64,000 nt of DNA from Haplodiscus bocki (Eukaryota). The translations under genes and the position numbers were made by a program. Positions 1-58,869 of the stretch are shown one piece after another. Each line of letters opens with the position of its first letter. Within the stretch, counting starts at the first letter, position 1. The notes under the pieces are model-generated. The model was not told the DNA's origin. It searched no databases and worked only from the letters and a program-made list of their open reading frames with translations. Location of the stretch: positions 123,070,001 to 123,134,000 of the forward strand of contig OZ296648.1 of NCBI GenBank assembly GCA_965655095.1, written 5' to 3'.

Positions 1-469
1 GGTTCGTCAAGTACTGTCAACCCAAGGTTGTCTGGCAGTCCGTCAGGTCTTGGTATTTTCAAGAAAGCGTCAATGTCGCCAACTGCAGGAATGAAATCAG
101 GAATGAACGGCTTCAGTCTATATTCCAAGTCAAGACTCTGCGGGGTGTATTTAGTTATGTAGCGAAATATCTCTTTCACTTCATTGTCGACCTTTAGGTG
201 CTCGTACTCTGCAGGGTCATAAGCTCCTTCAGGGGCATCGTCGTCTTCGTCATCGTCACTGCTGTCCTCTTCGTCGTCTTCATCGTCATTGGCATCGTCC
301 GCGTTCGGAGGTCGTTTAGCCAGAACTGGTTTAGATGAACGACTTTCCGTCGCTGCGCTGGATGGTTTGTTGGTTGAACCTGGCTTAGTCAAGTACTCGG
401 AAGTATCTTCCTCACTCAAATCGTCGTCTCGGTTCATCGCTGAGGGGTTCGGTTTCAGAGGCGCAACTT
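1..469 (-). CDS. IFT46: Intraflagellar transport protein 46, large internal coding exon (3'-partial, continues past window start)
   Basis: Manual minus-strand translation is open: ...EVAPLKPNPSAMNRDDD...DDANDDEDDEEDSSDDDEDDDAPEGAYDPAEYEHLKVDNEVKEIFRYITKYTPQSLDLEYRLKPFIPDFIPAVGDIDAFLKIPRPDGLPDNLGLTVLDEP. The acidic tract followed by EGAYDP..YEHL...LKPFIPDFIPAVGDIDAFLK.PRPDG...LGL.VLDEP is the IFT46 signature. Acceptor TATTCCAACAG ends at 470 (phase 1). Missed by the ORF track because it has no stop in the window. Confidence 0.95.
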
Positions 470-5925: not shown

Positions 5926-6032
5926 TGCATGCTTTCCTCCACTAAGGCTTTCTGTTACAGTGCATGACACCCCTTTAACTGGATTTCAAATATTAGGACG
6001 CACACATGTAATCTATTTCAGTCAGGTACCAG
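5926..6032. other. ~107-bp inter-unit linker, present between all adjacent units but not at either array end
   Basis: TGCATGCTTTCCTCCACTAAGG...CTATTTCAGTCAGGTACCAG follows CCAATAGTTC in units 1-17. The donor copy instead continues GACAGGCGGTG (51136) and unit 1 is preceded by CAATTGGAAC. Confidence 0.85.
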
Positions 6033-36000: not shown

Positions 36001-39000
36001 ATATTTTTGTGTCCAAAATTAAAAAACAAATTCATTTTTTCAGCCAAAACTAAGTGAAAACGAGTTGCCTCTTCACCTGTAGCACCGTTATTCTGAAAGA
36101 AAATGGGGTGAACCTAGCGTTTTCAATTTCACAATTACGTTCAATGTAATGGGTCTTTTCAATTGTTTTGTTTTGTTTTCTGGGTATTATTCACGTGACT
36201 GAGACAGTTTGGGTGGGTTACTCAGACAGCAAAAGAGATTTCTGCAGAAGTCGCCAGAAACTCCGGCATGATAAATCGAGCATCGCATTTTCCTCCTAAT
36301 CAGCTGTGCCAGAGAGAATATTTGATTTTAAAGGTATCAGAGCCGGTTCAATTTCGACTTCTTTGCATACAATCGATAGTAAGTCCGCTTCAAGATCTCG
36401 TATCGCGTAATGTCCGGGGATTACAAATCCCCAAAGTTGATATGTCATTGCGTGATCATTGCTGTTTTCCTTCCTGCATTCACATAGGCGAGGCATATCT
36501 TTAATACCCGACCCATATGTCAAATGTATTGCATCTTCGAACAATACTCTGTTGGAGTCCATTCCTTGTTGTTTGGATGGTAATGATGTCAACCATGTTG
36601 AGATTCCTTTTGCTTGCAATAGTTCTATGTGCCTCTGCATTTTATCGTCAGTTTTTCCTAGTACGTCCTAGTAGGACAATTTCTGGTTGATTGCAGTATG
36701 TTTCTTCAATATCCCGTCAGGATCAGATTGAAAAGCTTCTCCAGATATCATCGCTTCCTTTACTTCTTCAGTTAGAAAATCGGGAGAGCGTAATTGTTGT
36801 CGGCATTGATGAGACGGATATGAAGTCACGAGTCCTCCATACCCAAGAGGTAGGGCAGTAATATCTCTCCGTATCAGAAACGTTTTGACGTCCGATGACA
36901 ACTTCCACGAAGCTACGAAAATCTTCTTCTAAGGAATTCATCAAATCACTCACATAGTCAAGGGGTCTCAGGAAATAGTTCCAACTGTTCTGGAGAATTC
37001 GAGTGTACGCTATATGGCAGAGATAGGGCTCGGATCGCGCTCCTTTTGATAATGCGCAAACTTGATTTCTCCAGGTTTTGATTGTGTCATCTGCGAACAT
37101 CCTGCAATATTCTATTTCACCTACAACGGCTCCCAAACGTTTCCGTGCGATTTCAGTGATGTTCATTGCGGTGTTTTGGAAAAATCTGTTAGCTTCAGTT
37201 TTTATTTCTTCAGATTCGCAGATCAGCCAACATTTATATGCCTTGGGAAAGTAACCATACTTTGGGTCAAAGCAGTTTATCTGGTCCCACCATTTCTTAA
37301 CTCTCAAAAGTTCACCCAGGCACGCAGCGTCATCCGCAAACCATTCCTATACTATAGTCTCTGCTTCGAGTCTTTCCAACAAGGCTTTCATACCGATAGC
37401 GTAATGGGCCAAAGCAATGTTGTCCCCTTGTGTAGTGCCTTCTTGCAAATCAAGTTCCATGCCTTTCCTCGTGAACAGGCGTACTGCTTCCTGGTACGTG
37501 ATCATTAGATCGCAATGGACTTTGGGACAGATGAATTGAGCGTTGTGTAGGGATCTTTCTCGGCTCATGCTATTGAAAGCGTTGGATGTGTCTGTCTGAA
37601 GCATGCAATCCCTTGAAGGTAAACCATAGATTTTTTGCAGCCTTGTGGATAGCAGCTTCAATACCACCTTCTTGTCCACGGCAGGTTTGTCGGACGCCAA
37701 CTTCTTCGAACACATCCGCCTTCAGAAGCTTCGAAAAAGTTTTACCGATGACTCTTCGTAGAGCTTCTTCTATGCCAATCGGTCAATCAGCACTAAGCCC
37801 ACCCTTGTCCAAACCAATAGTTCTGCATGCTTTCCTCCACTAAGACTTTCTGTTACAGTGCATGACACCCCTTTAACTGAATTTCAAATATTAGGACGCA
37901 CACATGTAATCTATTTCAGTCAGGTACCAGAAAACACAAATCTGAAACTTCACAATTTTGACATTCATAGCAGATCACCGAGTGGTCGTTCATCCACATG
38001 TCTCAAGTCGACAATTCCATGACCGAGAATTCGGAGCGCTGACTTTCATACAATAAAACTCAACAAACTTGACATTTACAGCGGATAATCGATTGGTGGA
38101 CTGCGATATTGCGGTAGTAAGCTTTTCTTCGGATATTTTCATTTTCAATAATCTACTTTCTGTTACCGTCAAAGAAAGTTGAGTTCATGAATTTGAGAAA
38201 AGATACGACTTTCAATTTATTGCGTTGTGTTCGATAGATGATTTAGAAAGTTTCGCCGAAATAGTTTTTCTATTTTGATCTGTCTTTGAGAAAAAGGTAG
38301 TTTTTATTATGGTTATAATTGAGATCTTAGAGATTTGATATGACAAAACTGGTCAAACTGGTCAAAATGCAACATGTTAGAGACGGTTAATCAGTAGTGC
38401 TGAAATTTAGAACTCTTCAGATTTGGCGTTCATGGCCGTTAAACAAAAGCCACGGAAAAAAACATTGCTCACTAATACAAACGAGGAACTTTGTAACATT
38501 GTAACAAAAAACAACGGAAAAAATCGATTGCAAAGGAAGCAAAAACATCGTTAAAACAATGTACAGAACACGCCAATGCCCATGAGAACACATAAACCAC
38601 AAAATGCCAATATTTAACAAGGTGGATTGCGAAATCCGAAAAAAAACATACTATATTTTTGTGTCCACAATTACAAAAAAAAATTCATTTTTTCAGCCAA
38701 AACTAAGTGAAAACGAGTTGCCTCTTCACCTGTAGCACCGTTATTCTGAAAGAAGAGTGGGGTGAACCTAGCGTTTTCAATTTCACAATCACCTTCAATG
38801 TAATGGGTCTTTTCAATTGTTTCGATTTGTTTCAGGATTGTTTTCTGGGTATTATTCACGTGACTGAGACAGTTTGGGTGGGTTACTCAGACAGCAAAAG
38901 AGATTTCTGCAGAAGTCGCCAGAAACTCCGGCATGATAAATCGAGCATCGCATTTTCATCTGAATCAGCTGTGCGAGAGAGAATATTTGATTTTAAAGGT

Positions 39001-42000
39001 ATCAGAGCCGGTTCAATTTCGACTTCTTTGCATACAATCGATAGTAAGTCCGCTTCAAGATCTCGTACCGCGTTATGTCCGGGGATTACAAATCCTCAAA
39101 GTTGATATGTCATTGCGTGATCATTGCTGTTTTCCTTCCTGCATTCACATAGGCGAGGCATATCTTTAATACCCGACCCATATGTCAAATGTATTGCATC
39201 TTCGAACAATACTCTGTTGGAGTCCATTCCTTGTTTGGATGGTAATGATGTCAACCATTTTGAGATTCCTTTTGCTTGCAACAGTTCTATGTGCCTCTGC
39301 ATTTTATCGTCAGATTTTCCCAGTACTTCCTAGTAGGACAATTTCTGATTGATTGCAGTATGTTTCTTCAATATCCCGTCAGGATCAGATTGAAAAGCTT
39401 CTCCAGATATCATCGCTTCCTTTACTTCTTCAGTTAGAAAATCGGGAGAGCGTAATTGTTGTCGGCATTGATGAGACGGATATGAAGTCACGAGTCCTCC
39501 ATACCCAAGAGGTAGGGCAGTAATATCTCTCCGTATCAGAAACGTTTTGACGTCCGATGACAACTTCCACGAAGCTACGAAAATCTTCTTCTAAGGAATT
39601 CATCAAATCACTCACATTGTCAAGGGGTCTCAGGAAAAAGTTCCAACTGTTCTGGAGAATTCGAGTGTACGCTATATGGCAGAGATAGGGCTCGGATCGC
39701 GCTGCTTTTGATAATGCGCAAACTTGATTTCTCCAGGTTTTGATTTTGTCATCTGCGAACATCCTGCAATATTCTATTTCACCTACAACGGCTCCCAAAC
39801 GTTTCCGTGCGATTTCAGAGATGTTCATTGCGGTGTTTTGGAAAAATCTGTTAGCTTCAGTTTTTATTTCTTCAGATTCGCTGATCAGCCAACATTTATA
39901 TGCCTTGGGAAAGTAACCATAATTTGGGTCAAAGCAGTTTATCTGGTCCCACCATTTCTTAACTCTCAAAAGTTCACCCAGGCACGCAGCGTCATCCGCA
40001 AACCATTCCTATACTATAGTCTCTGCTTCGAGTCTTTCCACCAAGGCTTTCATACCGATAGCATAATAGGCCAAAGCAATGTTGTCCACTTGTGTAGTGC
40101 CTTCTTGCAAATCAAATTCCATGCCTTTCCTCGTGAACAGGCGTCCTGCTTCCTGGTACGTGATCATTAGATCGCAATGGACTTTGGGACAGATGAATTG
40201 AGCGTTGTGTAGGGATCTTTCTCGGCTCATGCTATTGAAAGCGTTGGATGTGTCTGTCTGAAGCATGCATTCCGTTGAAGGTAAACCATAGATTTTTTGC
40301 AGCCTCGTGGATAGCAGCTTCAATGCCACCTTCTTGTCCACCGCAGGATTGTCGGACGCCAACTTCTTCGAACACATCCGCCTTCAGAAGCTTCGAAAAA
40401 GTTTTACCGATTACTCTTCGTAGAACTTCTTCTATGCCAATCGGTCAATCAGCACTAAGCCCACCCTTGTCCAAACCAATAGTTCTGCATGCTTTCCTCC
40501 ACTAAGGCTTTCTGTTACAGTGCATGACACCCCTTTAACTGGATTTCAATTATTAGGACGCACACATGTAATCTATTTCAGTCAGGTACCAGAAAACACA
40601 AATCTGAAACTTCACAATTTTGACATTCATAGCAGATCACCGAGTGGTCGTTCATCCACATGTCTCAAGTCGACAATTCCATGACCGAGAATTCGGAGCG
40701 CTGACTTTCATACAATAAAACTCAACAAACTTGACATTTACAGCGGATAATCGATTGGTGGACTGCGATATTGCGGTAGTAAGCTTTTCTTCGGATATTT
40801 TCATTTTCAATAATCTACTTTCTGTTACCGTCAAAGAAAGTTGAGTTCATGAATTTGAGAAAAGATACGACTTTCAATTTATTGCGTTGTGTTCGATAGA
40901 TGATTTAGAAAGTTTCGCCGAAATAGTTTTTCTATTTTGATCTGTCTTTGAGAAAAAGGTAGTTTTTATTATGGTTATAATTGAGATCTTAGAGATTTGA
41001 TATGACAAAACTGGTCAAACTGGTCAAAATGCAACATGTTAGAGACGGTTAATCAGTAGTGCTGAAATTTAGAACTCTTCAGATTTGGCGTTCATGGCCG
41101 TTAAACAAAAGCCACGGAAAAAAACATTGCTCACTAATACAAACGAGGAACTTTGTAACATTGTAACAAAAAACAACGGAAAAAATCGATTGCAAAGGAA
41201 GCAAAAACATCGTTAAAACAATGTACAGAACACGCCAATGCCCATGAGAACACATAAACCACAAAATGCCAATATTTAACAAGGTGGATTGCGAAATCCG
41301 AAAAAAAACATACTATATTTTTGTGTCCACAATTACAAAAAAAAATTCATTTTTTCAGCCAAAACTAAGTGAAAACGAGTTGCCTCTTCACCTGTAGCAC
41401 CGTTATTCTGAAAGAAGAGTGGGGTGAACCTAGCGTTTTCAGTTTCACAATCATGTTCAATGTAATGGGTCTTTTCAATTGTTTCGTTTTGTTTCAGGAT
41501 TGTTTTCTGGGTATTATTCACGTGACTGAGACAGTTTGGGTGGGTTACTCAGACAGCAAAAGAGATTTCTGCAGAAGTCGGCAGAAACTCCGGCATGATA
41601 AATCGAGCATCGCATTTTCATCTGAATCAGCTGTGCGAGAGAGAATATTTGATTTTAAAGGTATCAGAGCCGGTTCAATTTCGACTTCTTTGCATACAAT
41701 CGATAGTAAGTCCGCTTCAAGATCTCGTATCGCGTTATGTCCGGGGATTACAAATCCTCAAAGTTGATATGTCATTGCGTGATCATTGCTGGTTTTCTTC
41801 CTGCATTCACATAGGCGAGGCATATCTTTAATACCCGACCCATATGTCAAATGTATTGCATCTTCGAACAATACTGTGTTGGAGTCCATTCCTTGTTGTT
41901 TGGATGGTAATGATGTCAACCATGTTGAGATTCCTTTTGCTTGCAATAGTTCTATGTGCCTCTGCATTTTATCGTCAGTTTTTCCTAGTACTTCCTAGTA

Positions 42001-45000
42001 GGACAATTTGTGGTTGATTGCAGTATGTTTCTTCAATATCCCGTCAGGATCCGATTGAAAAGCTTCTCCAGATATCATCGCTTCCTTTACTTCTTCAGTA
42101 AGAAAATCGGGAGAGCGTAATTGTTGTCGGCATTGATGAGACGGATATGAAGTCACGAGTCCTCCATACCCAAAAGGTAGGGCAGTAATATCTCTCCGTA
42201 TCAGAAACGTTTTGACGTTTGATGACAACTTCCACGAAGCTACGAAAATCTTCTTCTAAGGAATTCATCAAATCACTCACATTGTCAAGGGGTCTCAGGA
42301 AATAGTTCCAACTGTTCTGGAGAATTCGAGTGTACGCTACATGGCAGAGATAGGGCTCGGATCGCGCTGCTTTTCATAATGCGCAAACTTGATATCTCCA
42401 GGTTTTGATTTTGTCATCTGCGAACATCCTGCAATATTCTATTTCACCTACAACGGCTCCCAAAAGTTTCCGTGCGGTTTGAATGATGTTCATTCCGGTG
42501 TTTTGGAAAAATCTGTTAGCTTCAGTTTTTATTTCTTCAGATTCGCAGATCAGCCAACATTTATATGCCTTGAGAAAGTAACCATACTTTGGGTCAAAGC
42601 AGTTTATCTGGTCCCACCATTTCTTAACTCTCAAAAGTTCACCCAGGCACGCAGCGTCACCCGCAAACCATTCCTATACTATAGTCTCTGCTTCGAGTCT
42701 TTCCATCAAGGCTTTCATACCGATAGCGTAAGAGGCCATAGCAATATTGTCCCCATGTGTAGTGCCTTCTTGCAAATCAAGTTCCATGCCTTTCCTCGTG
42801 AACAGGCGTGCTGCTTCCTGGTACGTGATCATTAGATCGTAATGGACTTTCGGACAGATGAATTGAGCGTTGTGTAGGGATCTTTCTCGGCTCATGCTAT
42901 TGAAAGCGTTGGATGTGTCTGTCTGAAGCATGCATTCCGTTGAAGGTAAACCATAGATTTTTTGCAGCCTCGTGGATAGCAGCTTCAATGCCACCTTCTT
43001 GTCCACCGCAGGATTGTCGGACGCCAACTTCTTCGAACACATCCGCCTTCAGAAGCTTCGAAAAAGTTTTACCGATTACTCTTCGTAGAACTTCTTCTAT
43101 GCCAATCGGTCAATCAGCACTAAGCCCACCCTTGTCCAAACCAAGTTCTGCAAGCATTCTTCCACTAAGGCTTTCTGTTACAGTGCATGACACCCCTGTA
43201 CCTGGATTTTAAATATTAGGACGCACACATGTAATCTATTTCAGTCAGGTACCAAAAAACACAAATCTGAAACTTCACAATTTTGACATTCATGGCAGAT
43301 CACCGAGTGGTCGTTCATCCATATGTCTCAAGTCGACAATTCCATGACCGAGAATTGGGAGCGCTGACTTTCATACAATAAAAATCAACAAACTTGACAT
43401 TTACAGCGGATAATCGATTGGTGGACTGCGATATTGCGGTAGTAAGCTTTTCTTCGGATATTTTCATTTTCAATAATCTACTTTCTGTTACCGTCAAAGA
43501 AAGTTGAGTTCATGAATTTGAGAAAAGATACGACTTTAAATTTATTGCGTTGTGTTCGATAGATGATTTAGAAAGTTTCGCCGAAATAGTTTTTCTATTT
43601 TGATCTGTCTCTGAGAAAAAGGTAGTTTTTATTATGGTTATAATTGAGATCTTCAGAGATTTGATATGACAAAACTGGTCAAAATGCAACATGTTAGAGA
43701 CGGTTAATCAAGAGTGCTGAAATTTAGAACTCTTCAGATTTGGCGTTCATGGCCGTTAAACAAAAGCGACGGAAAAAAACATTGCTCACTCATACAAACG
43801 AGGAATTTTGTAACATTGTAACAAAAAACAACGGAAAAAATCGATTGCAAAGGAAGCAAAAACATCGTTAAAACAATGTACAGAACACGCCAATGCCCAT
43901 GAGAACACATAAACCACAAAATGCCAATATTTAACAAGGTGGATCGCGAAATCCGAAAAAAACATACTATATTTTTGTGTCCAAAATTAAAAAAAAATCA
44001 TTCTTTCAGCCAAAAACTAAGTGAAAACGAGTTGCCTCTTCACCTGTAGCACCGTTATTCTGAAAGAACAGTGGGATGAAGCTAGCGTTTTCAATTTCAC
44101 ATTCACGTTCAATGTAATGGATCTTTTCAATTGTTTCGTTTTGTTTCAGGATTGTTTTCTGGGTATTATTCACGTGACTGAGACAGTTTGGGTGGGTTAC
44201 TCAGACAGCAAAAGAGATTTCTGCAGAAGTCGCCAGAAACTCCGGCATGATAAATCGAGCATCGCATTTTCATCTGAATCAGCTGTGCGAGAGAGAATAT
44301 TTGATTTTAAAGGTATCAGAGCCGGTTCAATTTCGACTTCTTTGCATACAATCGATAGTAAGTCCGCTTCAAGATCTCGTAACGCGTTATGTCCGGGGAT
44401 TACAAATCCTCAAAGTTGATATGTCATTGCGTGATCATTGCTGTTTTCCTTCCTGCATTCACATAGGCGAGGCATATCTTTAATACCCGACCAATATGTC
44501 AAATGTATTGCATCTTCGAACAATACTCTGTTGAAGTCCATTCCTTGTTGTTTGGATGGTAATGATGTCAACCATGTTGAGATTCCTTTTGCTTGCATGC
44601 TTGCAATAGTTCAATGTGCCTCTGCATTTTATCGTCAGTTTTTCCTAGTACTTCCTAGTAGGACAATTTGTGGTTGATTGCAGTATGTTTCTTCAATATC
44701 CCGTCAGGATCAGATTGAAAAGCTTCTCCAGATATCATCGCTTCCTTTACTTCTTCAGTTAGAAAATCGGGAGAGCGTAATTGTTGTCGGCATTGATGAG
44801 ACGGATATGAAGTCACGAGTCCTCCATACCCAAGAGGTAGGGCAGTAATATCTCTCCGTATAAGAAACGTTTTGACGTCCGATGACAACTTCCACGAAGC
44901 TACGAAAATCTTCTTCTAAGGAATTCATCAAATCACTCACATTGTCAAGGGGTCTCAGGAAATAGTTCCAACTGTTCTGGAGAATTCGAGTGCACGCTAT

Positions 45001-48000
45001 ATGGCAGAGATAGGGCTCGGATCGCGCTGCTTTTCATAATGCGCAATTTTGATATCTCCAGGTTTTGATTTTGTCATCTGCGAACATCCTGCAATATTCT
45101 ATTTCACCTACAACGGCTCCCAAAAGTTTCCGTGCGGTTTGAATGATGTTCATTCCGGTGTTTTGGAAAAATCTGTTAGCTTCAGTTTTTATTTCTTCAG
45201 ATTCGCAGATCAGCCAACATTTATATGCCTTGGGAAAGTAACCATACTTTGGGTCAAAGCAGTTTATCTGGTCCCACCATTTTTTAACTCTCAAAAGTTC
45301 ACCCAGGCACGCAGCGTCATCCGCAAGCCATTCCTAAACTATAGTCTCTGCTTCGAGTCTTCCCATCAAGGCTTTCATACCGATAGCGTAATAGGCCATA
45401 GCAATGTTGTCCCGTTGTGTAGTGCCTTCTTGCAAATCAAGTTCCATGCCTTTCCTCGTGAACAGGCGTGCTGCTTCCTGGTACGTGATCATTAGATCGT
45501 AATGGACTTTGGGACAGATGAATTGAGCGTTGTGTAGGGATCTTTCTCGGCTCATGCTATTGAGAGCGTTGGATGTGTCTGTCTGAAGCAGGCATTCCGT
45601 TGAAGGTAAACCATAGATTTTTTGCAGCCTCGTGGATAGCAGCTTCAATGCCACCTTCTTGTCCACCGCAGGTTTGTCGGACGCCACTTCTTCGAACACA
45701 TCCGCTTTCAGAAGCTTCGAAAATGTTTTACCGATGACTCTTCGTAGAACTTCTTCTATGCCAATCGGTCTGACAGCACTTAGCCCACCCTTGTCCAAAC
45801 CAATAGTTCTGCATGCTTTCCTCCACTAAGGCTTTCTGTTACAGTGCATGACACCCCTGTACCTGGATTTTAAATATTAGGACGCACACATGTAATCTAT
45901 TTCAGTCAGGTACCAAAAAACACAAATCTGAAACTTCACAATTTTGACATTCATGGCAGATCACCGAGTGGTCGTTCATCCATATGTCTCAAGTCGACAA
46001 TTCCATGACCGAGAATTGGGAGCGCTGACTTTCATACAATAAAAATCAACAAACTTGACATTTACAGCGGATAATCGATTGGTGGACTGCGATATTGCGG
46101 TAGTAAGCTTTTCTTCGGATATTTTCATTTTCAATAATCTACTTTCTGTTACCGTCAAAGAAAGTTGAGTTCATGAATTTGAGAAAAGATACGACTTTTA
46201 ATTTATTGCGTTGTGTTCGATAGATGATTTAGAAAGTTTCGCCGAAATAGTTTTTCTATTTTGATCTGTCTCTGAGAAAAAGGTAGTTTTTATTATGGTT
46301 AAAATTGAGATCTTAGAGATTTGATATGACAAAACTGGTCAAAATGCAACATGTTAGAGACGGTTAATCAAGAGTGCTGAAATTTAGAACTCTTCAGATT
46401 TGGCGTTCATGGCCGTTAAACAAAAGCGACGGAAAAAAACATTGCTCACTCATACAAACGAGGAATTTTGTAATATTGTAACAAAAAACAACGGAAAAAA
46501 TCGATTGCAAAGGAAGCAAAAACATCGTTAAAACAATGTACAGAACACGCCAATGCCCATGAGAACACATAAACCACAAAATGCCAATATTTAACAAGGT
46601 GGATCGCGAAATCCGAAAAAAACATACTATATTTTTGTGTCCAAAATTAAAAAAAAATCATTCTTTCAGCCAAAAACTAAGTGAAAACGAGTTGCCTCTT
46701 CACCTGTAGCACCGTTATTCTGAAAGAACAGTGGGATGAAGCTAGCGTTTTCAATTTCACATTCACGTTCAATGTAATGGGTCTTTTCAATTGTTTCGTT
46801 TTGTTTCAGGATTGTTTTCTGGGTATTATTCACGTGACTGAGACAGTTTGGGTGGGTTACTCAGACAGCAAAAGAGATTTCTGCAGAAGTCGCCAGAAAC
46901 TCCGGCATGATAAATCGAGCATCGCATTTTCATCTGAATCAGCTGTGCGAGAGAGAATATTTGATTTTAAAGGTATCAGAGCCGGTTCAATTTCGACTTC
47001 TTTGCATACAATCGATAGTAAGTCCGCTTCAAGATCTCGTAACGCGTTATGTCCGGGGATTACAAATCCTCAAAGTTGATATGTCATTGCGTGATCATTG
47101 CTGTTTTCCTTCCTGCATTCACATAGGCGAGGCATATCTTTAATACCCGACCCATATGTCAAATGTATTGCATCTTCGAACAATACTCTGTTGAAGTCCA
47201 TTCCTTGTTGTTTGGATGGTAATGATGTCAACCATGTTGAGATTCCTTTTGCTTGCATGCTTGCAATAGTTCAATGTGCCTCTGCATTTTATCGTCAGTT
47301 TTTCCTAGTACTTCCTAGTAGGACAATTTGTGGTTGATTGCAGTATGTTTCTTCAATATCCCGTCAGGATCAGATTGAAAAGCTTCTCCAGATATCATCG
47401 CTTCCTTTACTTCTTCAGTTAGAAAATCGGGAGAGCGTAATTGTTGTCGGCATTGATGAGACGGATATGAAGTCACGAGTCCTCCATACCCAAGAGGTAG
47501 GGCAGTAATATCTCTCCGTATCACAAACGTTTTGACGTCCGATGATAACTTCCACGAAGCTACGAAAATCTTCTTCTAAGGGTTTCATCAAATCACTCAG
47601 ATTGTCAAGGGTTCTCTGGAAATAGTTCCAACTGTCCTGGAGAATTCGAGTGTACGCTATGTGGCAGAGATAGGGCTCGGATCGCGCTGCTTTCGATTAT
47701 GCGCAAACTTGATTTCTCCAGGTTTTGGTTTTGTCATCTGCGGACATCCTGCAATATTCTATTTCACCTACAACGGCTCCCAAAAGTTTCCGTGCGGTTT
47801 GAATGATGTTCATTCCGGTGTTTTGGAAAAATCTGTTAGCTTCAGTTTTTATTTCTTCAGATTCGCAGATCAGCCAACATTTATATGCCTTGGGAAAGTA
47901 ACCATACTTTGGGTCAAAGCAGTTTATCTGGTCCCACCATTTCTTAACTCTCAAAAGTTCACCCAGGCACGCAGCGTCATCCGCAAACCATTCCTACACT

Positions 48001-49329
48001 ATAGTCTCTGCTTCGAGTCTTTCCATCAAGGCTTTCATACCGATAGCGTAATAGGCCATAGCAATGTTGTCCCGTTGTGTAGTGCCTTCTTGCAAATCAA
48101 GTTCCATGCCTTTCCTCGTGAACAGGCGTGCTGCTTCCTGGTACGTGATCATTAGATCGTAATAGACTTTGGGACAGATGAATTGAGCGTTGTGTAGGGA
48201 TCTTTCTCGGCTCATGCTATTGAGAGCGTTGGATGTGTCTGTCTGAAGCAGGCATTCCGTTGAAGGTAAACCATAGATTTTTTGCAGCCTCGTGGATAGC
48301 AGCTTCAATGCCACCTTCTTGTCCACCGCAGGTTTGTCGGACGCCACTTCTTCGAACACATCCGCTTTCAGAAGCTTCGAAAATGTTTTACCGATGACTC
48401 TTCGTAGAACTTCTTCCATGCCAATCGGTCTGACAGCACTTAGCCCACCCTTGTCCAAACCAATAGTTCTGCATGCTTTCCTCCACTAAGGCTTTCTGTT
48501 ACAGTGCATGACACCCCTGTACCTGGATTTTAAATATTAGGACGCACACATGTAATCTATTTCAGTCAGGTACTAAAAAACACAAATCTGAAACTTCACA
48601 ATTTTGACATTCATGGCAGATCACCGAGTGGTCGTTCATCCACATGTCTCAAGTCGACAATTCCATGACCGAGAATTGGGAGCGCTGACTTTCATACAAT
48701 AAAAATCAACAAACTTGACATTTACAGCGGATAATCGATTGGTGGACTGCGATATTGCGGTAGTAAGCTTTTCTTCGGGAAATTTTCATTTTCAATAATC
48801 TTCTTTCTGTTACCGTCAAAAAGAGTTGAGTTCATGAATTTGGGAAAAGATACGACTTTCAATTTAATGCGTTGGGTTCGATAGATGATTTAGAAAGTTT
48901 CGCCGATAATAGTTTTTCTATTTTGATCTGTCTTTGAGAAAAAGGCAGTTTTTATTATGGTTATAATTGAGATCTTCAGAGATTTGATATGACAAAACTG
49001 GTCAAACTGGTCAAAATGCAACATGTTAGAGACGGTTAATCGAAATTGCTGAGATTTAGAACTCTATAGATTTGGCGTTCATGGCCGTTAAACAAAAGCC
49101 ACGGAAAAAAACATGGCTCACTAATACAAACGAGGAATTTTGTAACATTGTAACAAAAAACAACGGAAAAAATCGACTGCAAAGGAAGCAAAAACATCGT
49201 TAAAACAATGTACAGAACACGCCAATGCCCATGAGAACACATAAACCACAAAATGCCAATAATTAACAAGGTGGATCGCGAAATCCGAAAAAAACATACT
49301 ATATTTTCGTGTCCAAAAGTTAAAAAAAT

Positions 49330-52205
49330 TCATTTTTTCAGCCAAAACTATCTGAAAACGAGTTGCCTCTTCACCTGTAGCACCGTTATTCTGAAAGAAG
49401 AATGGGGTGAAGCTAGCGTTTTCATTTTCACATTCACGTTCAATGTAATGGGTCTTTTCAATTGTTTCGTTTTGTTTCAGGATTGTTTTCTGGGTATTAT
49501 TCACGTGACTGAGACAGTTTGGGTGGGTTACTCAGACAGCAAAAGAGATTTCTGCAGAAGTCCGCAGAAACTACGGCATGATAATCGAGCATCGCATTTT
49601 CATCTGAATTAGCTGTGCGAGAGAGAATATTTGATTTTAAAGGTATGAGAGCCGGTTCAATTTCGACTTCTTTGCATACAATCGATAGTAAGTCCGCTTC
49701 AAGATCTCGTATCGCGTTATGTCCGGGGATTACAAATCCTCAAAGTTGATATGTCATTGCGTGATCAATGCTGTTTTCCTTCCTGCATTCACATAGGCGA
49801 GGCAGATCTTTAATACCCGACCCATATGTCAAATGTATTGCATCTTCGAACAATACTCTGTTGAAGTCCATTCCTTGTTGTTTGGATGGTAATGATGTCA
49901 ACCATGTTGAGATTCCTTTTGCTTGCATGCTTGCAATAGTTCAATGTGCCTCTGCAATTTGTCGTCGGTTTTTCCTAGTACTTCCTAGTAGGACATTTTG
50001 TGGTTGATTGCAGTATGTTTCTTCAATATCCCGTCAGGATCAGATTGAAAAGCTTCTCCAGATATGATCGCTTCCTTTACTCTTCAGTTAGAAAATCGGG
50101 AGAGCGGAATTGTTGTCGGCATTGGTGAGACAGATATGGAATCACGAGTCCTCCATACCGAAGAGGTAGGGCAGTAATATCTCTCCGTATCAGAAACGTT
50201 TTGACGTCCGATGATAACTTCCACGAAGCCACGAAAATCTTCTTCTACGGGTTTCATCAAATCACTCTTATTGTCAAGGGTTCTCTGGAAATAGTTCCAA
50301 CTGTTCTGGAGAATTCGAGTGTACGCTATGTGGCAGAGAGGGCTCGGATCGCGCTGCTTTTGAAAATGCGCAAACTTGATTTCTCCAGGTTTTGATTTTG
50401 TCATCTGCGAACATCCTGCAATATTCTATTTCACCTACAACGGCTCCCAAAAGTTTCCGTGCGGTTTGAATGATGTTCATTCCGGTGTTTTGGAAAAATC
50501 TGTTAGCTTCAGTTCTTATTTCTTCAGATTCGCAGATCAGCCAACATTTATATGCCTTGGGAAAGTAACCATACTTTGGGTCAAAGCAGTTTATCTGGTC
50601 CCACCATTTCTTACCTCTCAAAAGTTCACCCAGGCACGCAGCGTCATCCGCGAACCATTTCTGTACTATAGTCTCTGCTTCGAGTCTTTCCATCAAGGCT
50701 TTCATACCGATAGCGTAATAGGCCATAGCAATGTTGTCCCCTTGTGTAGTGCCTTATTGCAATTCAAGTTCCATGCCTTTCCTCGTGAACAGGCGTGCTG
50801 CTTCCTGGTACGTGATCATTACATAGCAATGGACTTTGGGACAGATGAATTGAGCGTTGTATAGAGATCTTTCTCGGCTCATGCTATTGAAAGCGTTGGA
50901 TGTCTGTCCGAAGCATGCATTCCGTTGAAGGTAAACTATAGATTTTTTGCCGCCTGGTGGATAGCAGCTTCAATGCCACCTTCTTGTCCACCCCAGGTTT
51001 GTCGGACGCCAACTTCTTCGAACACATTCGCTTTCAGAAGCTTCGAAAATGTTTTACCGATGACTCTTCGTAGAACTTCTTCTGTGCCAATCGGTCTGAC
51101 AGCACTTAGCCCACCCTTGTCCAAACCAATAGTTCGACAGGCGGTGTAAGTCTCAAATGCCACCAGATTGACATTTTCACAACATATTTTTCGGGCAACT
51201 TCGGACACTGTGTTGCAAAACTTTTCACTAACTTGTTTGAAGTTGGTCAAGTAGGCCATTCGTCGAACATTCGGAGCGTCCAGACCACTGGGTCCACTAG
51301 CTCCTCGCGCCTGCAATGCGGCGGTTTAATTCGGAGTGGTCTATGGAATCAAACACAACTGGGTTAAATTCCGCCGGTAATCCCTGAATCATTTCGGATG
51401 TCATTACTTGTCGACGTGGTGGATGCAGTTTGTGGAGTTGTTTCAGCACAATTTCATTTGGCTGTAGGACACCTTTGGAATCTTCCTATTCAATGAGATT
51501 CACTGCTCTTGTCAACCTTCCTTTAAGAACTAATTCGGTAAATTCTTTATTGATACTTGACTTGCGTGTTTTAGATTTGTGCAGCTTTTGTTGGATTGCT
51601 TCACATTCATTAAAAATCAAATCGAATTCTCCATCAATCCACCATTTCAGTCGTTTCTCTAAAAATTTCGAATGATCTTCCGCTTTCGATTTCCTGAAAT
51701 GTTTCTGTAGCATCAACATGCAGTAGACGGAAGATTTTTACTGATTTGTTCTGCAGGTGGGAGATTTTGACAAAGAGTGGGAGAATTCAGTTAGCTTCAG
51801 GAACAAAATGCTTCACTGCATTACCATGGGCTAGATACAAAGTTTTTCTTCAGAAAGACAGCTTTACCGTAAATTTCATCAGTTTTCCGAGAGAATTTTT
51901 CGTCTTTGCTCATCGGGGTGCTCGGCTCCAAGCAAGGTGAGGTAATCGAGAGCACTTGCATGCCCTGGCCTAGGCTACACGAGGCATCATTTTCGTATCT
52001 GGTGTCAATTTTCAGGGCATCCATCCCTGGAGTAAGCCCGGTGTGTGAATCTTTATATTTTTTGGCGTATGAAATCGCTGGTCCAATTCTCCGCCGATGG
52101 AAGTCCACTGCACATGACATGGACATAACCGCATATATGGCTAGAAAGATCTTGATTCTTTTCGAAAGCGCCAATACATGAATTACATTTCATTTGATCG
52201 ACCAT
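49330..52205 (-). pseudogene. CRE ORF2 (PHD-like finger - RT - CCHC - RLE) with multiple frameshifts and stops
   Basis: Starts MVDQMKCNSCIGAFEKNQDLSSHICGYVHVMCSGLPSAENWTSDFIRQK (decayed Cys/His finger). Continues through ORF-track fragments 51821-52174, 51486-51719, 50936-51316, 50274-50726, 49740-49928 and 49121-49504. Confidence 0.8.
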
Positions 52206-52280
52206 TTTATCGTTACTCAAATTCTCGTTTGTGATCTGAGCTGATGAAAGCTACGTAGATCAAAAAAGGCTTACGTTAAA

Positions 52281-52859
52281 TCAGTTGTAAGATGTTTTCT
52301 TCTTTCCTCTCTTTCTGTCATCATTCTCAAGATCCGGATAGTCGTGGATAATAGTTGAAACAAATTGTCGCTCTAGCTGAAGGTTCAGATGAACTTTGCC
52401 GAGTTCAGTTCGTACGATGGGTTCAGTTTTCATACGATGGGATATCAGTTTTTTGTCAACGTCGATAACGTGAAAATCAGTTTCCAGTAACTTGTGGTAT
52501 TTACTCGTAGCTCTGTGGCGCTGACAGTGCAGAATTGCGCGGATACGTGATTTGAAGGAGCGGAGGATAGACCAAAGTTCTCAGGGATCGACAGCTGGGT
52601 ACTCTTTTCTGGGATCGTTTCTTGGATTGAGATGTCGGGATATGGTGTTGTTTATAATGTCGTGCCAAATTATGAGATCAGATTTGGCTCTCAATGGTTG
52701 GTCGCTGTTCAGTAGAGATTGCAATCGCTGTTTCGAATTTGGATGATGTCGGTTGAGCCCAAGCCCTGGAATTGTAGTTAAATTTCCTCTGAGATGGTTG
52801 TTTTCTTTTTCGGCTTCTTCGGCGATTGGTCTAAGACAGCTAGCAGCAATTATATGCAT
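52281..52859 (-). pseudogene. CRE-associated ORF1, 193 codons with one premature stop (52581-52583); SGNH/esterase-like
   Basis: MHIIAASCLR...TIPGLGLN...LIIWHDIINNTI...VDP*ELWSILRSF...IDVDKKL...ELGKVHLNLQLE...KRGKKKTSYN*. Motif order resembles SGNH blocks I (xxxAAS), II (PG), III (IIxHxxxN) and V (xxVHLN). Confidence 0.6.
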
Positions 52860-52901
52860 GTCCACTAGTGAAACAATTAATCTGAAACAAAACGTGATAA
52901 A

Positions 52902-52932
52902 CTTAGCAAGAAGTTTATCACAACAATAAGGC
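52902..52932 (-). other. Spliced-leader-like 31-mer at the 5' end of the CRE element
   Basis: GCCTTATTGTTGTGATAAACTTCTTGCTAAG, directly abutting the candidate TSD and 42 nt upstream of the ORF1 ATG. Shares an exact 18-mer with 55273-55290. Confidence 0.6.
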
Positions 52933-52954
52933 TGTGTCCAAAATTCGAATTCAT
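52933..52954. repeat. Candidate target-site duplication of the CRE insertion (right copy)
   Basis: TGTGTCCAAAATT(CGAATTCAT). The 13-mer recurs at 4100-4112 and at the equivalent site in most units, exactly where CRE protein homology stops. Units 9 and 13 read TGTGTCCAAAATTAAAAAACAAATTCAT, suggesting up to 22 bp before A-run slippage. Confidence 0.65.
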
Positions 52955-53350
52955 GTCTCCTCTCTCGAAAATACTCGGTGTTTTTTTCAAAATTAAGAGG
53001 CGTAGGGGAACTCGGCAACAGATTTTGACTTTTAAGATCACGGATTCCAAAGGACATTTGAAAGCATGATCGGAGATCTGATTGACACTTTGAAATTCTG
53101 CACCAGCTGTGAATCAAGAGTTCATTCGAAAAAGTCAAATTGAGACAAGTACCTGTCACAGTGTCCCACATTCAAAAAATGGATGGATCAATCATGTAAT
53201 TTCGAGTTACGCCATTTTTCTGCCCGAAGTTTAAGAAGTTTGCAAGGTAAACAACGCGAAAATGAACAAGTACCTGCCAAAAAGAGGTCGATCTGATCGT
53301 TTACAACAAATAACTAGAATCCGTCTATCATAGAAAAAATGCAAGTTTTG

Positions 53351-53608
53351 GACTGGATAAAAAATTAAGCATACACCAGTTTGCAACACACATTCTTGCT
53401 TTCAGTCAGAATGTAGTAGTAGTAGTAGAAGACTTGAATTAACAAAATGTGCACTACATAACGACTTCGTTGTCAAATCAAGTCTTCTACTACTACTACT
53501 ACTACTACGTTGTTTAGACCAGGATGCATCATGATGTCAATGGTTGACTTGAAAAAAATCAAGCAAACACCAGTTTCCAACACACATTCTTCCTTTCAGT
53601 CAGAATGT
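53351..53608. repeat. ~63-bp direct repeats flanking a ~130-bp fold-back insert with (GTA)n/(TAC)n arms
   Basis: Direct repeats at 53351-53414 and 53546-53608. Inverted arms GTAGTAGTAGTAGTAGAAGACTTGAATTAACAA (53413-53445) and TTGTCAAATCAAGTCTTCTACTACTACTAC (53470-53508). Confidence 0.8.
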
Positions 53609-53676
53609 GTAGAAAGACGTTTTAGCAGAACCAACTAAGTTCTTAAGGATTATAGAAGAGAGTTACAAAACAATTT

Positions 53677-53722
53677 GCAGAGAAACCACATTTATCTAGG
53701 CAGAGAAACCACATTTATCTAG
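53677..53722. repeat. 23-bp tandem duplication
   Basis: GCAGAGAAACCACATTTATCTAG x2. Confidence 0.9.
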
Positions 53723-54041
53723 CAACTTATTTGCTATTTTGGCCTCTAAGGATTATCCATGACGGGGGGAACAACCAAGATTCAAGTTAAATTTTGGAAC
53801 ATTTTTTTCTACAAAGCTCCAGTATAAAATATATTGAATTTTTCTTGCTACAATATAATTGTTTTCACGAATACGGAAATACATTTTTGTAGAAATACCC
53901 TTGACCGCTGCCCACTGGACCAAAGATAACGTTCGCAATGCCGAGGGGAAAGTAAAAATAAGCATGAATGCTGTTAATAACGTTTTGAGAGAAGCCTTCA
54001 GTGGTTTCATTTTTTTTTCATATAATCATATTCCTGCATAC

Positions 54042-54180
54042 CTGCTTTCTTTCCGTTTCGTGGAGTAGGTGTATACAGAGAGGCAACCTCTTCCCCGTCT
54101 GGAACTTCAACACACTCGTCGTAAGGTTGGTTTATCATCAAAGTCGTGTTCGAAGGCAACTCTTCTTCAGCATATGCCAT
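54042..54180 (-). CDS. IFT46: Probable first coding exon of IFT46
   Basis: Translates MAYAEEELPSNTTLMINQPYDECVEVPDGEEVASLYTPTPRNGKKA + G, then donor G|GTATGC at 54041. NQPYDE..EV...E resembles the N-terminal motif of long IFT46 orthologues (Chlamydomonas NQPHDEEV, from memory). The phase-1 donor matches the phase-1 acceptor at 470 (G+AA = Glu), giving an in-frame join. Confidence 0.75.
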
Positions 54181-54196
54181 AGGACATTTTGCGTAA

Positions 54197-54207
54197 CTGA
54201 AAAAAAA
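54197..54207 (-). promoter_or_regulatory. Strong splice acceptor (TTTTTTTTCAG) 16 nt upstream of the IFT46 ATG; cis 5'-UTR acceptor or trans-splice (outron) acceptor
   Basis: Minus strand reads ...CCTATTTTTTTTCAG|TTACGCAAAATGTCCTATGGCA. Confidence 0.5.
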
Positions 54208-55268
54208 TAGGATGTCTGATTCTCACCCAACCACGTCGCAGCTAAATCAGGGCTTGGTCCTTTTCGGTTTTTTCACAGCACTTAATTGTTCCGAAAAACT
54301 TACCAATTGATTCTCAATCGCATTTTCATCAATCAATGAATCTATACAAAATGGGGCTACAGAACCGTGTCTCTGCACTTCAAACGCCCACAATTTTCTG
54401 ATGCCAATGCTGAAAGAACGAATAGAGGAAATGAAAACATTGTGCCAATTGAAGAGCTGGAATAAACTAAGCGCTTCTGCTTCTTTTATGTCGTTAGCAG
54501 GAGCAGTACTAGTAATTGAAATACGCCCGGAAAATTCTTGCTCAGAGAACGTCTCTTTTCGTCGTTGAAAGCCGGCTAACTACAATCTCCATGTAGCAAC
54601 GACAAGTTCGTTGTATTAGTCTTTGAAGAAACACCAATGAACACGAAGTAGACGTTGTTCAGACCAGGATGCATCGTGAGATCAATGGTTGTTGGTAGCC
54701 CAATTACGAGGGGTTCTCTGCGCTAAAGTTCTCACGATTGCTTCTGGGGATTGTGGCAATCGAAACTAACATCAATAGATGATCAAATGTGGAGCGCACA
54801 GTTCCTCAAACAAAGGTATGGATTAAAAACAAGGTTGTCATAACCCGTCACAAACTTATAGAGGGTAAGCAGACCCTTAAATTGTAGATTTAAAGAAATC
54901 GTTCAGCTTCCTACATTTGTACGTAGTTTGTTTTTTATAAGTGCAATTCCGCTCCGGTGAGACCCACTTAAGACGTCGTTTCTGGAACTACTTTACAGTC
55001 GATATCAGCGTACCAACAGCTGCTCTCACAACTGAGTACCGGAAAAATCAAGGATTCAAAGATGTTCATTCTAGTTGAAAATCGTAAAGAGTAGAACTTC
55101 GATCCAAGAGAACACTGCGTGCTCTACTGCAGGCTGCTTATCATCAACAGTATGCTTGAGGTCACGAGAAATATTTCAACTGAACTTTCTTCGAAAGGAT
55201 TGCTTCCATTCATTGCCTGAAAGCCGAAAACGTCTTTTTGCTGCAGTCAAAGTCAAATTAGGATTGTC

Positions 55269-55299
55269 TTCGTATTGTTGTGATAAACTTATCAAAAAG
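55269..55299 (+). other. Spliced-leader-like 31-mer at the 5' end of the CR1/L2-group LINE
   Basis: TTCGTATTGTTGTGATAAACTTATCAAAAAG, 6 nt upstream of an ATG (55306) that leads into the ORF1 remnants. Confidence 0.55.
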
Positions 55300-55305
55300 T
55301 TTCAT

Positions 55306-55997
55306 ATGATTTATGAAAGATGCTCACCAAAGCACGGTGAAAATCTGTGACAGACAAAACGAGCAATAATGATGGGTCAAAGCATCTCCTCATTCAATGC
55401 ACCAGGACTGGTCCGTACGGCAAAGATTGTTGCGTGGACATCTATAAGGTTGCGAAAGCGCATTACGAGAAACTTCATGGATCACACATTTTTGTGTGGT
55501 TTTTGCGCTGCATCGGGGTTTCAAGATGGCAAAACATCGCCACCATCAAATAACGCCCATATTACGAATTTTTGAGGAGATTCAAATGAACAGTATGGTC
55601 GACGTGACAACATCCGCATTTTTGGGTTCCAGATTCATGACGAGGATGTATATGAGCGTGTGGTAGAGTTGGGGAACGAAAATCGGAGTGACTTTACCAG
55701 AAGGAGAAATCAGGGTGCTTCATCGCTTAACCTCCAGAAACCCAGGATCAAGCCCAGTAATTGCAAAGTTTTATCCGAAGTGAAATCAGAGTTCGCGTTA
55801 TGACACATGAGAAATTTGAAAAACTCATCCAAAACACCTATGATAAGGACGATGTAACACTACTGCGAGCAGTATTAGCAAATACCATTCCCCAGCGCCC
55901 CGACGTGGAATATGTTACTATATTCAGCGGAGAAGTAGTTCTAACAATGTCCAACGATAAAAGGCATTTTTCTAATAATTTTATTCGGTTCACGTAA
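55306..55997 (+). pseudogene. LINE ORF1 remnant (PHD-like finger + L1-type RRM/CTD)
   Basis: LLIQCTR...DCCVDIY....HYEKLHGSHIFVWFLRC (decayed PHD), NEQYGRRDNIRIFGF....EDVYERVVEL, VLHRLTSRNPGSSPVIAKF and RVM...KDDVTLLRA, spread across frameshifts. Confidence 0.75.
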
Positions 55998-56067
55998 ATG
56001 GGACGTGGAACTTGTTGATTCTGATTCTATAGATTTTAGGCATTTTTGGTAGGCGACTTCCCAAAAA

Positions 56068-58869
56068 ATGACCCCACCCATGTATTTAGATGAAGGTAAT
56101 AAAATTTTTAGCAAGGACACTAAAACCACTCGAGAAAGCAAGGAGAGGATTTTCCACGTCAATATTCGTTCGCTTAGTAAAAACTTTGATAAATTAGAGC
56201 TCTTTTAATGACCTTTGGCAATAACAAGCCATCCGTTATTTGTTTATCAGAAGCGTGGATATCAAATGTAAACGAACTTCAATTGTTACACTTACAAAAT
56301 TACTTGCCCCCGATAATTCATAATGGATTCAATAGAAGGGACGGTGAAGTATTTTATGTACAAGAATCCATCAAAAATGACGTGGTATGCACTAAAGCAA
56401 ACCTATGTCCTTAAGTCGTTAAATCATTGAACGAGAACAACCAATAGTTTGTTGTGGTTTGCATGTACATCTCTCCGTCCTTCCAACATTCTTTAATTTT
56501 AAAGGAGGTTGAGTTGATAATAAACGACGTTTCTGATTTTTTGGGTTGCGCCGTTTTTATTGTAGGCGGTATGAAAATTCATCTGCTAAAACAAAACAAT
56601 TTGTCTAATAGTTATTCAGTTTTTCTGCAGTATAACGGAATGACACAACTATTAACGACTGCAACACGAAGTGCTTTAGATAAAACAACTCTGATCCATT
56701 ATGTATTTCATAACCATTTCCTTGACAACCCTGTCTGTGGTACACTTGATTCTGGTTTAATTGACCAATGAGCTACTTTCGTGAAATTAACATTCCTTTG
56801 TAAGAAAAATGATGGTTTTGGAACTACGTACAGACTTTTATCTTTTATTTGTATTGAAAAAGCGAGAAAAGCCTATTTGGAATTACTTTCAAATGAACTG
56901 AAAACGCCCAATCTCCATGATGACTTTGATGAACAATTTGAAATGTTTTTAGAATCCGCACAAAATAGTATTTGAATTATGCAGTTCTGTAAAAAAAAAC
57001 AAAAAGATACAACATAAACTATCTTGCTTCAATAATAAAGTTAAAAATGCTATCAGTAAAAGAAGACAGGTATTGAAGGGTTTTAAAGAAAAACCAACTG
57101 CTTCGAATAAAACGAGACTCTTTAAAATTTGTCGAAAAAGAAGTTTTACTATTAAAAAAGCCGATTGTAATCATTTTTCGATTGTCTTTTCAAATTGTAT
57201 CAATAAAACGAAGAAATTCTCTGAGACGCTCAAGGGAATGACAGGCAAGAGAAGTGTGAAAAGAAGTCTGATAGTTAGTAATGGAAGTAAAGACATCATA
57301 ATGTTTCCTACTTTTTTTCTGGATGTGTTGAACAAAAAATTTGCAACTACTGTTGAAAGTCCAACCACACAGGAGCTCAAGGAATGTTTTAAAGAGAAAA
57401 ATAAAAATGATGACAAGACGTTTGCCTTCTCAATTAATCTGACTGAGGTTTTTAATACGGTAGGTAATTTGGATAACAACATAGCCGTTGGAATTGATGG
57501 TGTCTCAGCTGAAGTGCTTGAAACTTCGCTTTCGGTGATTTTTTTAATTGAGTTTTAAAATCTGTCTTTCTAACGCGGTTGGTTCTCAAAGTTTCTAAAA
57601 GATGCAAAATTTTATCTTTTACACGAATTGAGTGACGTACTGAATATCAAAACTATAGGTCGATATCGATATTACCTTTTGTTAGTAAAGTGTTCGAGAA
57701 AATCTTGTATGAACGATTGCATTCATTTTTCTATTTGAGGAACATGTTTCATCGTAGTAAACGAAGTACAAACGACGTTCTTGCTAAATTTACAGAACAA
57801 ATTAGGGGAGGAAGCACTGATACACTTACATGTTTAATGCTGGGATTTGCGTAAAGCTTTTGATTCCATCAACCATGAAATTTTAGTAGCTAAACTGGGA
57901 AAACATGGTGTCAGAGGAAATTGTTCGTTGTTTGAATCATTTTTGAAAGAACAACGTCAATTTGACAGGGTAAATGATGTACTTCAGGATTTCTTGTATC
58001 TGTTGGCTGGAGTACCGCAAGGCTCAATTCTAGAGATTCTACTAATTTTAAAATACATCAATGACTTACCAAGTGCTTCTGAATTTTCAAACTCAAATTT
58101 TTTTAGTGAAGACACGAATCCTATTTATCGTAAGAGTCAAGTTGATTTGTTTTTGCTAAACAAGATGTTTGAAATTGTTCCGAAAAGGTTGTCTGTCAAT
58201 AAGTTTTCTCTATATATCGATAGAACACAAGCAATAACCTTTTTAAAAAATCAGGGCGAAGAATTTCATTTATCAGATTCCAGCATTGCGCTAAGTAATT
58301 GTGTGAAGAGTCTTGGCTTTTTAAATGATTCACATTTAATTCTTAGTTTTCATATTGCTGAGGTAGTTAAAAGATTATCAAAACATTACTCAGTAATATC
58401 ACGATTTTCACACTATGTTAGAAAGCCTGTGCTTCTCCAGTACTATATCACTTATATTAAACCACTTGTTGGATGTGGTCTCTTAGCTCTTGGTTGTGCT
58501 TTAGGAAACAGATTGACACTTTTTTTTAAAATACTGAAAAAGATATTAAGACAACTTTGCTTTAAAGCTCGTCATTATTCATCTGCAGAGCTTTTTGATG
58601 AATTAAATAAGTTAAATGTGTATGACTATTATACTGTTGAGCTTCTGATTTTTTTCATTAAATCGGTTCAAACTGTTGTACCAACCGAAGAATTTATCGC
58701 GTTAAATGAGCGCAAAGTATGTAATATTGAAACCAGAAAAACTGAAGTTAACCTATTTTCTTTGCCAAATGAATGCTGCTCTGTTAGTCGTAGTTCTTTG
58801 CGTTACGAGGTGCAAAGCCGATCAACTGCCTATCAGAAACAGTTTTGGGTACAGTTGATTTTTCGATAA
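56068..58869 (+). pseudogene. LINE ORF2 remnant (apurinic endonuclease + reverse transcriptase)
   Basis: IFHVNIRSLSKNFDKL, PSVICLSEAW, VCMYISPS, FIVGG and TTLIHYVF (APE). AVGIDGVSAEVL, NYRSISILP, SKVFEKI, DLRKAFDSINHEIL..KL...GVRG, GVPQGSILE.LL.L.YINDLP and FFSEDTN (decayed FADDT) (RT). Many stops and frameshifts. Confidence 0.92.

Follow-up and report, generated by a model that had tools for sequence, protein, structure and literature searches.

A long-standing problem is how LINEs restore, generation after generation, a 5' end that is complete and can be translated; internal promoters and self-cleaving 5' ribozymes are the known answers. The locus analyzed here, a stretch of 64,000 nucleotides from Haplodiscus bocki (hereafter the window), bears on this problem, as two LINE copies lying on opposite strands start with variants of the same short motif. 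The question is what this motif is, and by which process it came to stand at the head of both elements.

An exact 18-mer, TATTGTTGTGATAAACTT, is present twice in the window, at 52911-52928 on the minus strand and at 55273-55290 on the plus strand, and was matched in none of 100 shuffles of the window (0/100), with two mismatches permitted. The corresponding 31-mers (52932-52902, minus; 55269-55299, plus) each agree with the spliced leader (SL) described below at 25 of 31 positions. The letters of the 18-mer and of both 31-mers, as well as the count of matches, had been reported in an earlier reading of this DNA made from the letters alone (the sequence-only reading), and all of them were reproduced. 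Both junctions between leader and element were spanned with zero differences by contigs of short reads (public DNA-like runs from a single study, which may derive from the source sample), and the window junctions are therefore not a chimera of the assembly.

The canonical SL of this genome, taken as the majority of its dispersed copies, is GCCTAATTGTTGTGATAAACTTATTAAATAG, with a length of 31 nt. Martinez et al. arrived at the same sequence for Symsagittifera roscoffensis, starting from transcript 5' ends that did not map; in this species, 30.2% of the genes are trans-spliced (PMC9911081). The acoel SL cited in the sequence-only reading was thus right, and the dispersed 31-mer, letter for letter the transcript-derived S. 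roscoffensis SL (PMC9911081), is a motif of host mRNA 5' ends; this identity also places the genome very near to, if not within, that species. In the 1.5-Gb genome, 1,546 occurrences of a core 16-mer of the SL were counted (reversed control: 0 and 1). The genome-wide search for the motif, which the sequence-only reading had proposed, distinguished true SL RNA genes, provided with a donor, from donor-less copies heading LINEs. There are 663 true SL RNA genes (SL followed by a GTAAGTA donor) in the genome, organized in tandem arrays beginning at C9:72.47 Mb, whose repeat unit also holds a 5S rRNA gene. In the SL RNA gene, two predicted stem-loops flank a U-rich, Sm-like stretch that is single-stranded, and all the features expected of such genes (exon, GT donor, Sm-like site, stem-loops and tandem repeats) were found in the C9 array. 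Judged from these sequence data, the shared 31-mer is the spliced-leader exon of this animal.

In addition to the SL RNA genes, the genome contains dispersed SL exons that lack a donor; they number at least ~880, which is a lower bound, as only about one third of the old copies of the plus-strand family (family 2, see below) keep an intact core. Alignment on the SL core of a sample of 30 dispersed sites on C1 showed similarity beginning at (A)GCCTAA and ending directly after ATAG, with unrelated sequence on both flanks. The dispersed leaders hence start at the first base of the SL RNA and stop at the exon/intron boundary, without the SL intron. The 30 sites formed 18 clusters at the DNA level, and at least 20 of them head LINEs, with a PHD-finger ORF1 and/or an APE ORF2 after the SL. 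In these SL-headed LINEs, ORF1 begins 0-300 nt past the SL junction and ORF2 opens with the APE endonuclease. Two more sites showed a Cys-rich ORF1 of similar look, 8 of the 30 were left unclassified, and no host-gene retrocopies were recognized among the 30 SL-headed sites. Identity among SL-headed copies of the same family ranged from 92 to 98%.

The minus-strand element of the window (family 1) is a degraded LINE copy of 3,611 nt (49322..52932, minus), bracketed by a TSD. The 5' copy of the TSD, AATTTTGGACACA (52933-52945, minus; 13 bp), abuts nt 1 of the SL, and the 3' copy, AACTTTTGGACACG (49308-49321, minus), adjoins the 3' end of the element. As this TSD encloses the 3,611-nt insertion, the inserted DNA has the SL at its very 5' end, which is the position that the sequence-only reading had assigned to it. 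The leader is represented here by nt 1-22 of the SL exon, with 1 mismatch (52911..52932, minus), and is followed by CTTGCT (52905-52910, minus), which replaces 20 nt of the undeleted copies. This amounts to a 14-nt deletion across the junction, which removed SL nt 23-31 together with ~11 nt of the element. That the minus-strand motif has AG at position 31 is consequently a coincidence, and the statement that both elements end in AG at the same position had to be abandoned.

Family 1 comprises 14 copies, those outside the window having been compared by alignment coordinates and short patterns only; on this basis, at least four other copies carry the SL, located on C9, C5, C7 and C3841. With a junction-spanning query, alignment begins at SL nt 2 in the C9 copy and at nt 5 in the C5 copy, and neither aligns upstream of the SL, while the C7 and C3841 copies have the canonical ...ATTAAATAG followed by AAGTATTTGATAAGTTTATCAC. 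In undeleted copies of this family, the first 20 nt of the element approximate the reverse complement of SL nt 12-31, and leader and element are predicted to form a perfect hairpin of 19-20 bp (-22 kcal/mol, z -8). A remnant of this hairpin, formed by the SL 3' half and the first bases of the element, is predicted in the window copy (52894..52921, minus), with a stem of 11-12 bp, a 6-nt loop and -12.2 kcal/mol.

The protein fragments of the window family 1 copy include a C2H2-like zinc finger, the reverse transcriptase (RT) motifs SNAFNS, QGD and FADD, and a C-terminal CxC..H..(R/G)HNAIRD..VEIEP module that resembles a restriction-like endonuclease (RLE). An RVT_1 domain was found in the RT fragment via Atlas; searches of the window RT fragments against Pfam and PDB gave nothing significant. 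In full-length relatives, the protein measures 950-1,120 aa; RVT_1 occupies a central position, APE is absent, and the C-terminus holds a conserved module (CxCG..H..C..RHN..EP..ARLD..FFDVRV). The sole PDB match of the C-terminal profile was a weak one (E = 1.4) to residues 937-988 of 8ibw_C, named in the PDB table as "Reverse transcriptase-like protein", which we take to be the Bombyx R2 protein. Family 1 is thus a LINE without APE, probably of the RLE type and with an R2-like look; the CRE clade named for it in the sequence-only reading is a candidate placement.

LINEs that insert into SL RNA genes are known from trypanosomatids (CRE1/SLACS/CZAR) and nematodes (NeSL-1). They resemble the present case in that a LINE is physically tied to the SL, and family 1 shares with them a single-ORF layout with no APE and an RLE-like C-terminus. 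Targeting of SL genes in the same manner, with the SL as target DNA or co-transcribed from the SL gene promoter, would fit the resemblance of the family 1 C-terminal module to the R2/CRE/NeSL group, and also the truncated SL 5' piece that in some copies lies immediately upstream of the complete SL. The upstream flanks are, however, unrelated both to each other and to the upstream sequence of the SL gene, the exon runs whole to the donor boundary, SL intron sequence being absent both there and past the 3' end of the element, and the TSD flanking the window family 1 copy is not SL sequence. Moreover, the known elements interrupt the SL gene, which is their target, whereas here the SL exon is part of the inserted copy, outside SL genes. 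For the sampled copies, insertion into SL RNA genes was excluded, as no SL gene sequence is present on both sides, and targeting of SL genes is altogether a very improbable source of the leaders.

The plus-strand element starts with a decayed, full-length SL exon (55269..55299, plus; 25/31), which forms the 5' end of an old, APE-type LINE copy with many stops (family 2; 55300..58869, plus), including an RT fragment at 57847-58869 (plus). A search for this family returned 173 candidate copies, of which 28 distinct, 5'-complete ones were compared. In 26-27 of these 28, the SL stands at one fixed junction, directly on TTTCATATGATTTATG; the majority SL letters of the family equal the canonical SL at 31/31 positions, and the flanks upstream of the SL are random, with a pairwise identity of 0.29, which leaves no family sequence reaching upstream of the leader. 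ORF1 (MPTKA... in the better copies) begins ~17 nt after the SL junction and gave no match against Pfam. The family also showed an APE domain (in locus L064) and a weak RVT_1 match, and the CR1/L2 group to which the sequence-only reading had assigned it is a candidate placement. For the window copy, a TSD and the 3' end were searched for and not found. In this same copy, ATCAAAAAG corresponds to a mutated ATTAAATAG, and the plus-strand AAGTTT is composed of the decayed SL end (ATAG changed to AAAG) and the family's own start, TTTCAT; the "N6 then AAGTTT" that had been listed as a feature shared by both elements is accordingly fortuitous.

The two window elements belong to unrelated LINE types, one APE-type and the other without APE and RLE-like in appearance, in agreement with the sequence-only reading. 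Other SL-headed families, distinct from family 2, combine a PHD ORF1 with APE. Sequence comparison thus puts the SL at the 5' end of no fewer than two unrelated LINE types and of twelve or more families defined at the DNA level. As far as DNA can show, the motif is found on host mRNA 5' ends and at LINE 5' termini genome-wide, and family sequence does not extend beyond it; these were the three points on which the sequence-only reading had made its proposal of a trans-splicing route depend. Three marks of a relic SL in DNA were likewise found, namely a leader identical to the mRNA SL, exact exon ends, and unrelated flanks together with a TSD abutting the leader, the latter in the window family 1 copy.

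The dispersed leaders were probably made by SL trans-splicing onto LINE RNA, followed by full-length reverse transcription. According to this mechanism, the SL would be trans-spliced onto LINE transcripts, and the reverse transcriptase encoded by the element would copy the product as far as its 5' end. Insertions of full length would therefore start with the SL exon, which would make up the 5' terminus of the element and nearly its entire 5' UTR. Trans-splicing plus reverse transcription is the simplest process that accounts for exact exon ends, the absence of the SL intron, a fixed junction in each family, and the occurrence of the leader in unrelated LINE types. We infer that trans-splicing is the joining step; it would also cap the LINE RNA and free promoter-less copies from read-through transcripts. 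A scan of the 5' ends of both window elements against Rfam gave no match, to a ribozyme or to anything else.

A leader could also be joined to a LINE during reverse transcription, if the reverse transcriptase, on reaching the 5' end of the LINE RNA, changed template to the SL RNA. Template switching of this kind gives rise to U6/L1 chimeras, and template jumps could have a part in the partially duplicated SL that some copies show at the 5' end. Yet only the exon is found, the intron part of the SL RNA never being present, and the junction is fixed in each family instead of lying at variable truncation points. Given the absent intron sequence and the fixed junctions, template switching onto SL RNA was excluded, and the chance that it produced the leaders is close to nil.

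A different matter is whether trans-splicing still operates on these elements. The SL may have been captured once or a few times and then inherited, with an internal promoter that initiates at SL nt 1 and no current role for trans-splicing. In a tree based on body sequence only, three family 2 copies (L063, L064 and L089) form a clade with the SL variant G26 in common, which indicates that the SL can pass through DNA, even if the signals of the tree were mixed overall. Moreover, identity between family 2 copies was lower in the SL (0.74) than in the adjacent sequence (0.83), which argues against the simple prediction of a fresh SL at each insertion and shows that decay of the SL is no slower than that of the body. 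The absence of 5' transduction of flanks is also what precise internal initiation predicts. On the other hand, the majority SL of the old family 2 is still canonical at 31/31 positions, and the SL heads many families with unalignable 5' UTRs as well as an unrelated, non-APE LINE. Inheritance would thus need either many independent captures, themselves products of trans-splicing, or strong selection on all 31 nt. The variants G26 and A24, in addition, recur across unrelated SL-headed families. Variant SL genes were considered as the source of this recurrence and rejected, as the genome search gave no SL gene in which a leader with G26 or A24 precedes GTAAGT. On balance, capture followed by inheritance alone appears unlikely.

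With trans-splicing retained as the origin of the leaders, we propose only tentatively, as somewhat less likely than not, that LINEs of this animal regularly form their 5' ends by SL trans-splicing when they replicate, with a fresh SL in each cycle. Under such a cycle, a promoter-less genomic copy would be transcribed within a longer RNA, and the terminal AG of its relic SL would serve as acceptor. A new, capped SL would then be exchanged for the old one ahead of reverse transcription. In family 1, the 20-nt anti-SL stretch, a mimic of stem I of the SL RNA, may assist in this exchange. As decayed copies differ from the canonical SL, the 5' ends of their RNAs could reveal whether the leader is renewed.

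Dinoflagellates provide an established case of retrogenes with relic SLs (PMC5585692, PMC12014239); there, as here, an SL encoded in DNA at the 5' end marks passage through a trans-spliced RNA and reverse transcription. In dinoflagellates, host genes are marked and the relics are 5'-truncated and stacked (PMC5585692, PMC12014239), whereas here the mark is on LINEs, whose SL is complete and constitutes the canonical 5' end of entire families. Among flatworms, six SL exons merged to transposable elements were described in Schistosoma mansoni, with misassembly not excluded (PMC5832876), and 597 discarded SL-like loci of parasitic flatworms were associated with LTR/LINE elements (PMC12582326). A similar idea was expressed in both cases as a side remark; the loci were treated as noise and described as partial leaders, without a family-level analysis of 5' ends. 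The present case differs in phylum, in the full length of the SL, in the junction fixed per family, in the presence of one TSD, and in the involvement of two LINE types. In the literature on SL-headed retrotransposons, nothing fuller than these flatworm remarks (PMC5832876, PMC12582326) was found. SL-headed LINEs are unmentioned in the S. roscoffensis genome paper (PMC9911081), as are SL-headed retrotransposons in the A. vaga Penelope and M. lignano SL papers. The novelty lies in the scale of the phenomenon and in how cleanly its anatomy shows at the level of families, for two LINE types of an acoel.

In terms of function, and by analogy, the closest counterpart is the HDV-like ribozyme found at the 5' ends of R2, RTE and L1Tc elements (PMC3185411, PMC3383444). 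In both cases an RNA processing event would set the 5' end within a co-transcript, and no promoter would need to be carried. Self-cleavage by a ribozyme leaves an uncapped end to which nothing is added, whereas trans-splicing would provide a 31-nt exon bearing a cap, and this exon would become part of the DNA copy. Two unrelated LINE types with the host SL as their first 31 bases point to trans-splicing as a third route to a 5' end. Were it indeed a regular step of LINE replication, trans-splicing would stand as a third general answer beside internal promoters and 5' ribozymes. On the practical side, the at least ~880 dispersed SL exons will confound the finding of SL genes, the mapping of trans-splice sites and the annotation of genes in acoels, and the flatworm papers hint at a similar annotation problem (PMC5832876, PMC12582326).

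Two further observations concern the surroundings of the minus-strand element. The sequence-only reading had placed this element in sense orientation within an intron of IFT46. A host IFT46 exon was detected at 3..488 (minus; PF12317, E 1.4e-35), on the same strand as the element; no upstream IFT46 exon was identified, and the element may lie either in an IFT46 intron or upstream of the gene. Between the exon and the element, the latter heads a 49-kb tandem array that the sequence-only reading had missed. The array (3371..49307, minus) consists of 17 full units of ~2.66 kb, 94-97.5% alike, plus 1 partial unit. Each unit is composed of the TSD motif, 826 nt of locus-specific sequence and the 3' 1.82 kb of the family 1 LINE, and the TSD motif is accordingly repeated every ~2,660 bp down to position 4100. 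The 826-nt part is found in the genome at this locus only, except for a ~250-nt sub-repeat, and the junction of TSD motif and SL is unique in the genome. For the same two reasons, an array that is itself a mobile element and a pile-up of independent insertions were both rejected. As read from its unit structure, the array is the product of local amplification, after insertion, of a segment made up of the 3' half of the LINE, the TSD and neighboring DNA.

The base preceding GCCTAA in the spliced-leader (SL) sequences of the sampled genome loci (L001-L090) was A in most retrocopies, and likewise in the SL gene. Because of this agreement, the SL RNA probably has AGCC... as its 5' end, which would give an exon of 32 nt. 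In the SL RNA gene array of contig C9, every repeat unit also contained a 5S rRNA gene (e.g. L049:1734-1852, plus strand, 118 bits).

The SL variants A24 and G26 appeared repeatedly across unrelated families (L003, L008, L009, L012, L023, L063, L064, L066, L076, L078, L079 and L089, among others), and no SL gene with A24 or G26 followed by GTAAGT exists in the genome. This recurrence could stem from SL genes that have since died out, from RNA editing or from a mutational hot spot.

Immediately 3' of the SL junction, an acceptor-like YTTCAG was found within the first 12 nt at 7 of 30 sites, belonging to several clusters (L003, L012, L020, L022, L023, L025 and L027); the window family carries TTTCAT in its place. 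In family 1, the minus-strand LINE of the window, the ~20 nt right after the SL were almost fully reverse-complementary to SL nt 12-31, so that in undeleted copies the two segments form a perfect hairpin of 19-20 bp (G000:C7:3523725-3523760; G000:C3841:10782-10817), of which 11-12 bp remain in the window copy (52894-52921, minus strand). The same ~20 nt were also similar to the intron strand of stem I of the SL RNA. This anti-SL stretch could help to bring SL RNA to the acceptor site, and the hairpin may account for the 14-nt deletion that the window copy carries.

Truncated SL pieces, spanning roughly nt 3-7 to nt 15-20, were located immediately upstream of complete SL-headed elements at L001, L023, L027, L033-L036, L063, L064 and L067-L069, and contig C1 contained several same-strand SL pairs spaced 26-230 nt apart. 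Both arrangements suggest either that older SL relics served as insertion targets or that the template was switched by jumps.

Beside the family 1 LINE, a 49 kb tandem array (window 3371-49307, minus strand) comprised 17 full units of ~2.66 kb and one partial unit, 94-97.5% alike, each composed of the target-site duplication motif, 826 nt of locus-specific DNA and the 3' 1.82 kb of the LINE. Since the unit-specific part is present at this locus only in the genome, the array is a local amplification that postdates the LINE insertion. A very high-copy repeat (window 53044-53663; contig depth in the thousands vs. ~12 in the flanks) looks like a MITE, and encloses a long palindrome around (TAG)n (53413-53507) with sub-threshold miRNA-precursor matches on both strands. 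Elsewhere, two more tandem arrays, with periods of ~15.6 kb (L033-L036, G000:C2:147.40-147.45 Mb) and ~9.5 kb (L040-L047, G000:C7:57.91-57.99 Mb), carried an SL-headed sequence in each unit, the first bases of which are, as it happens, GT.
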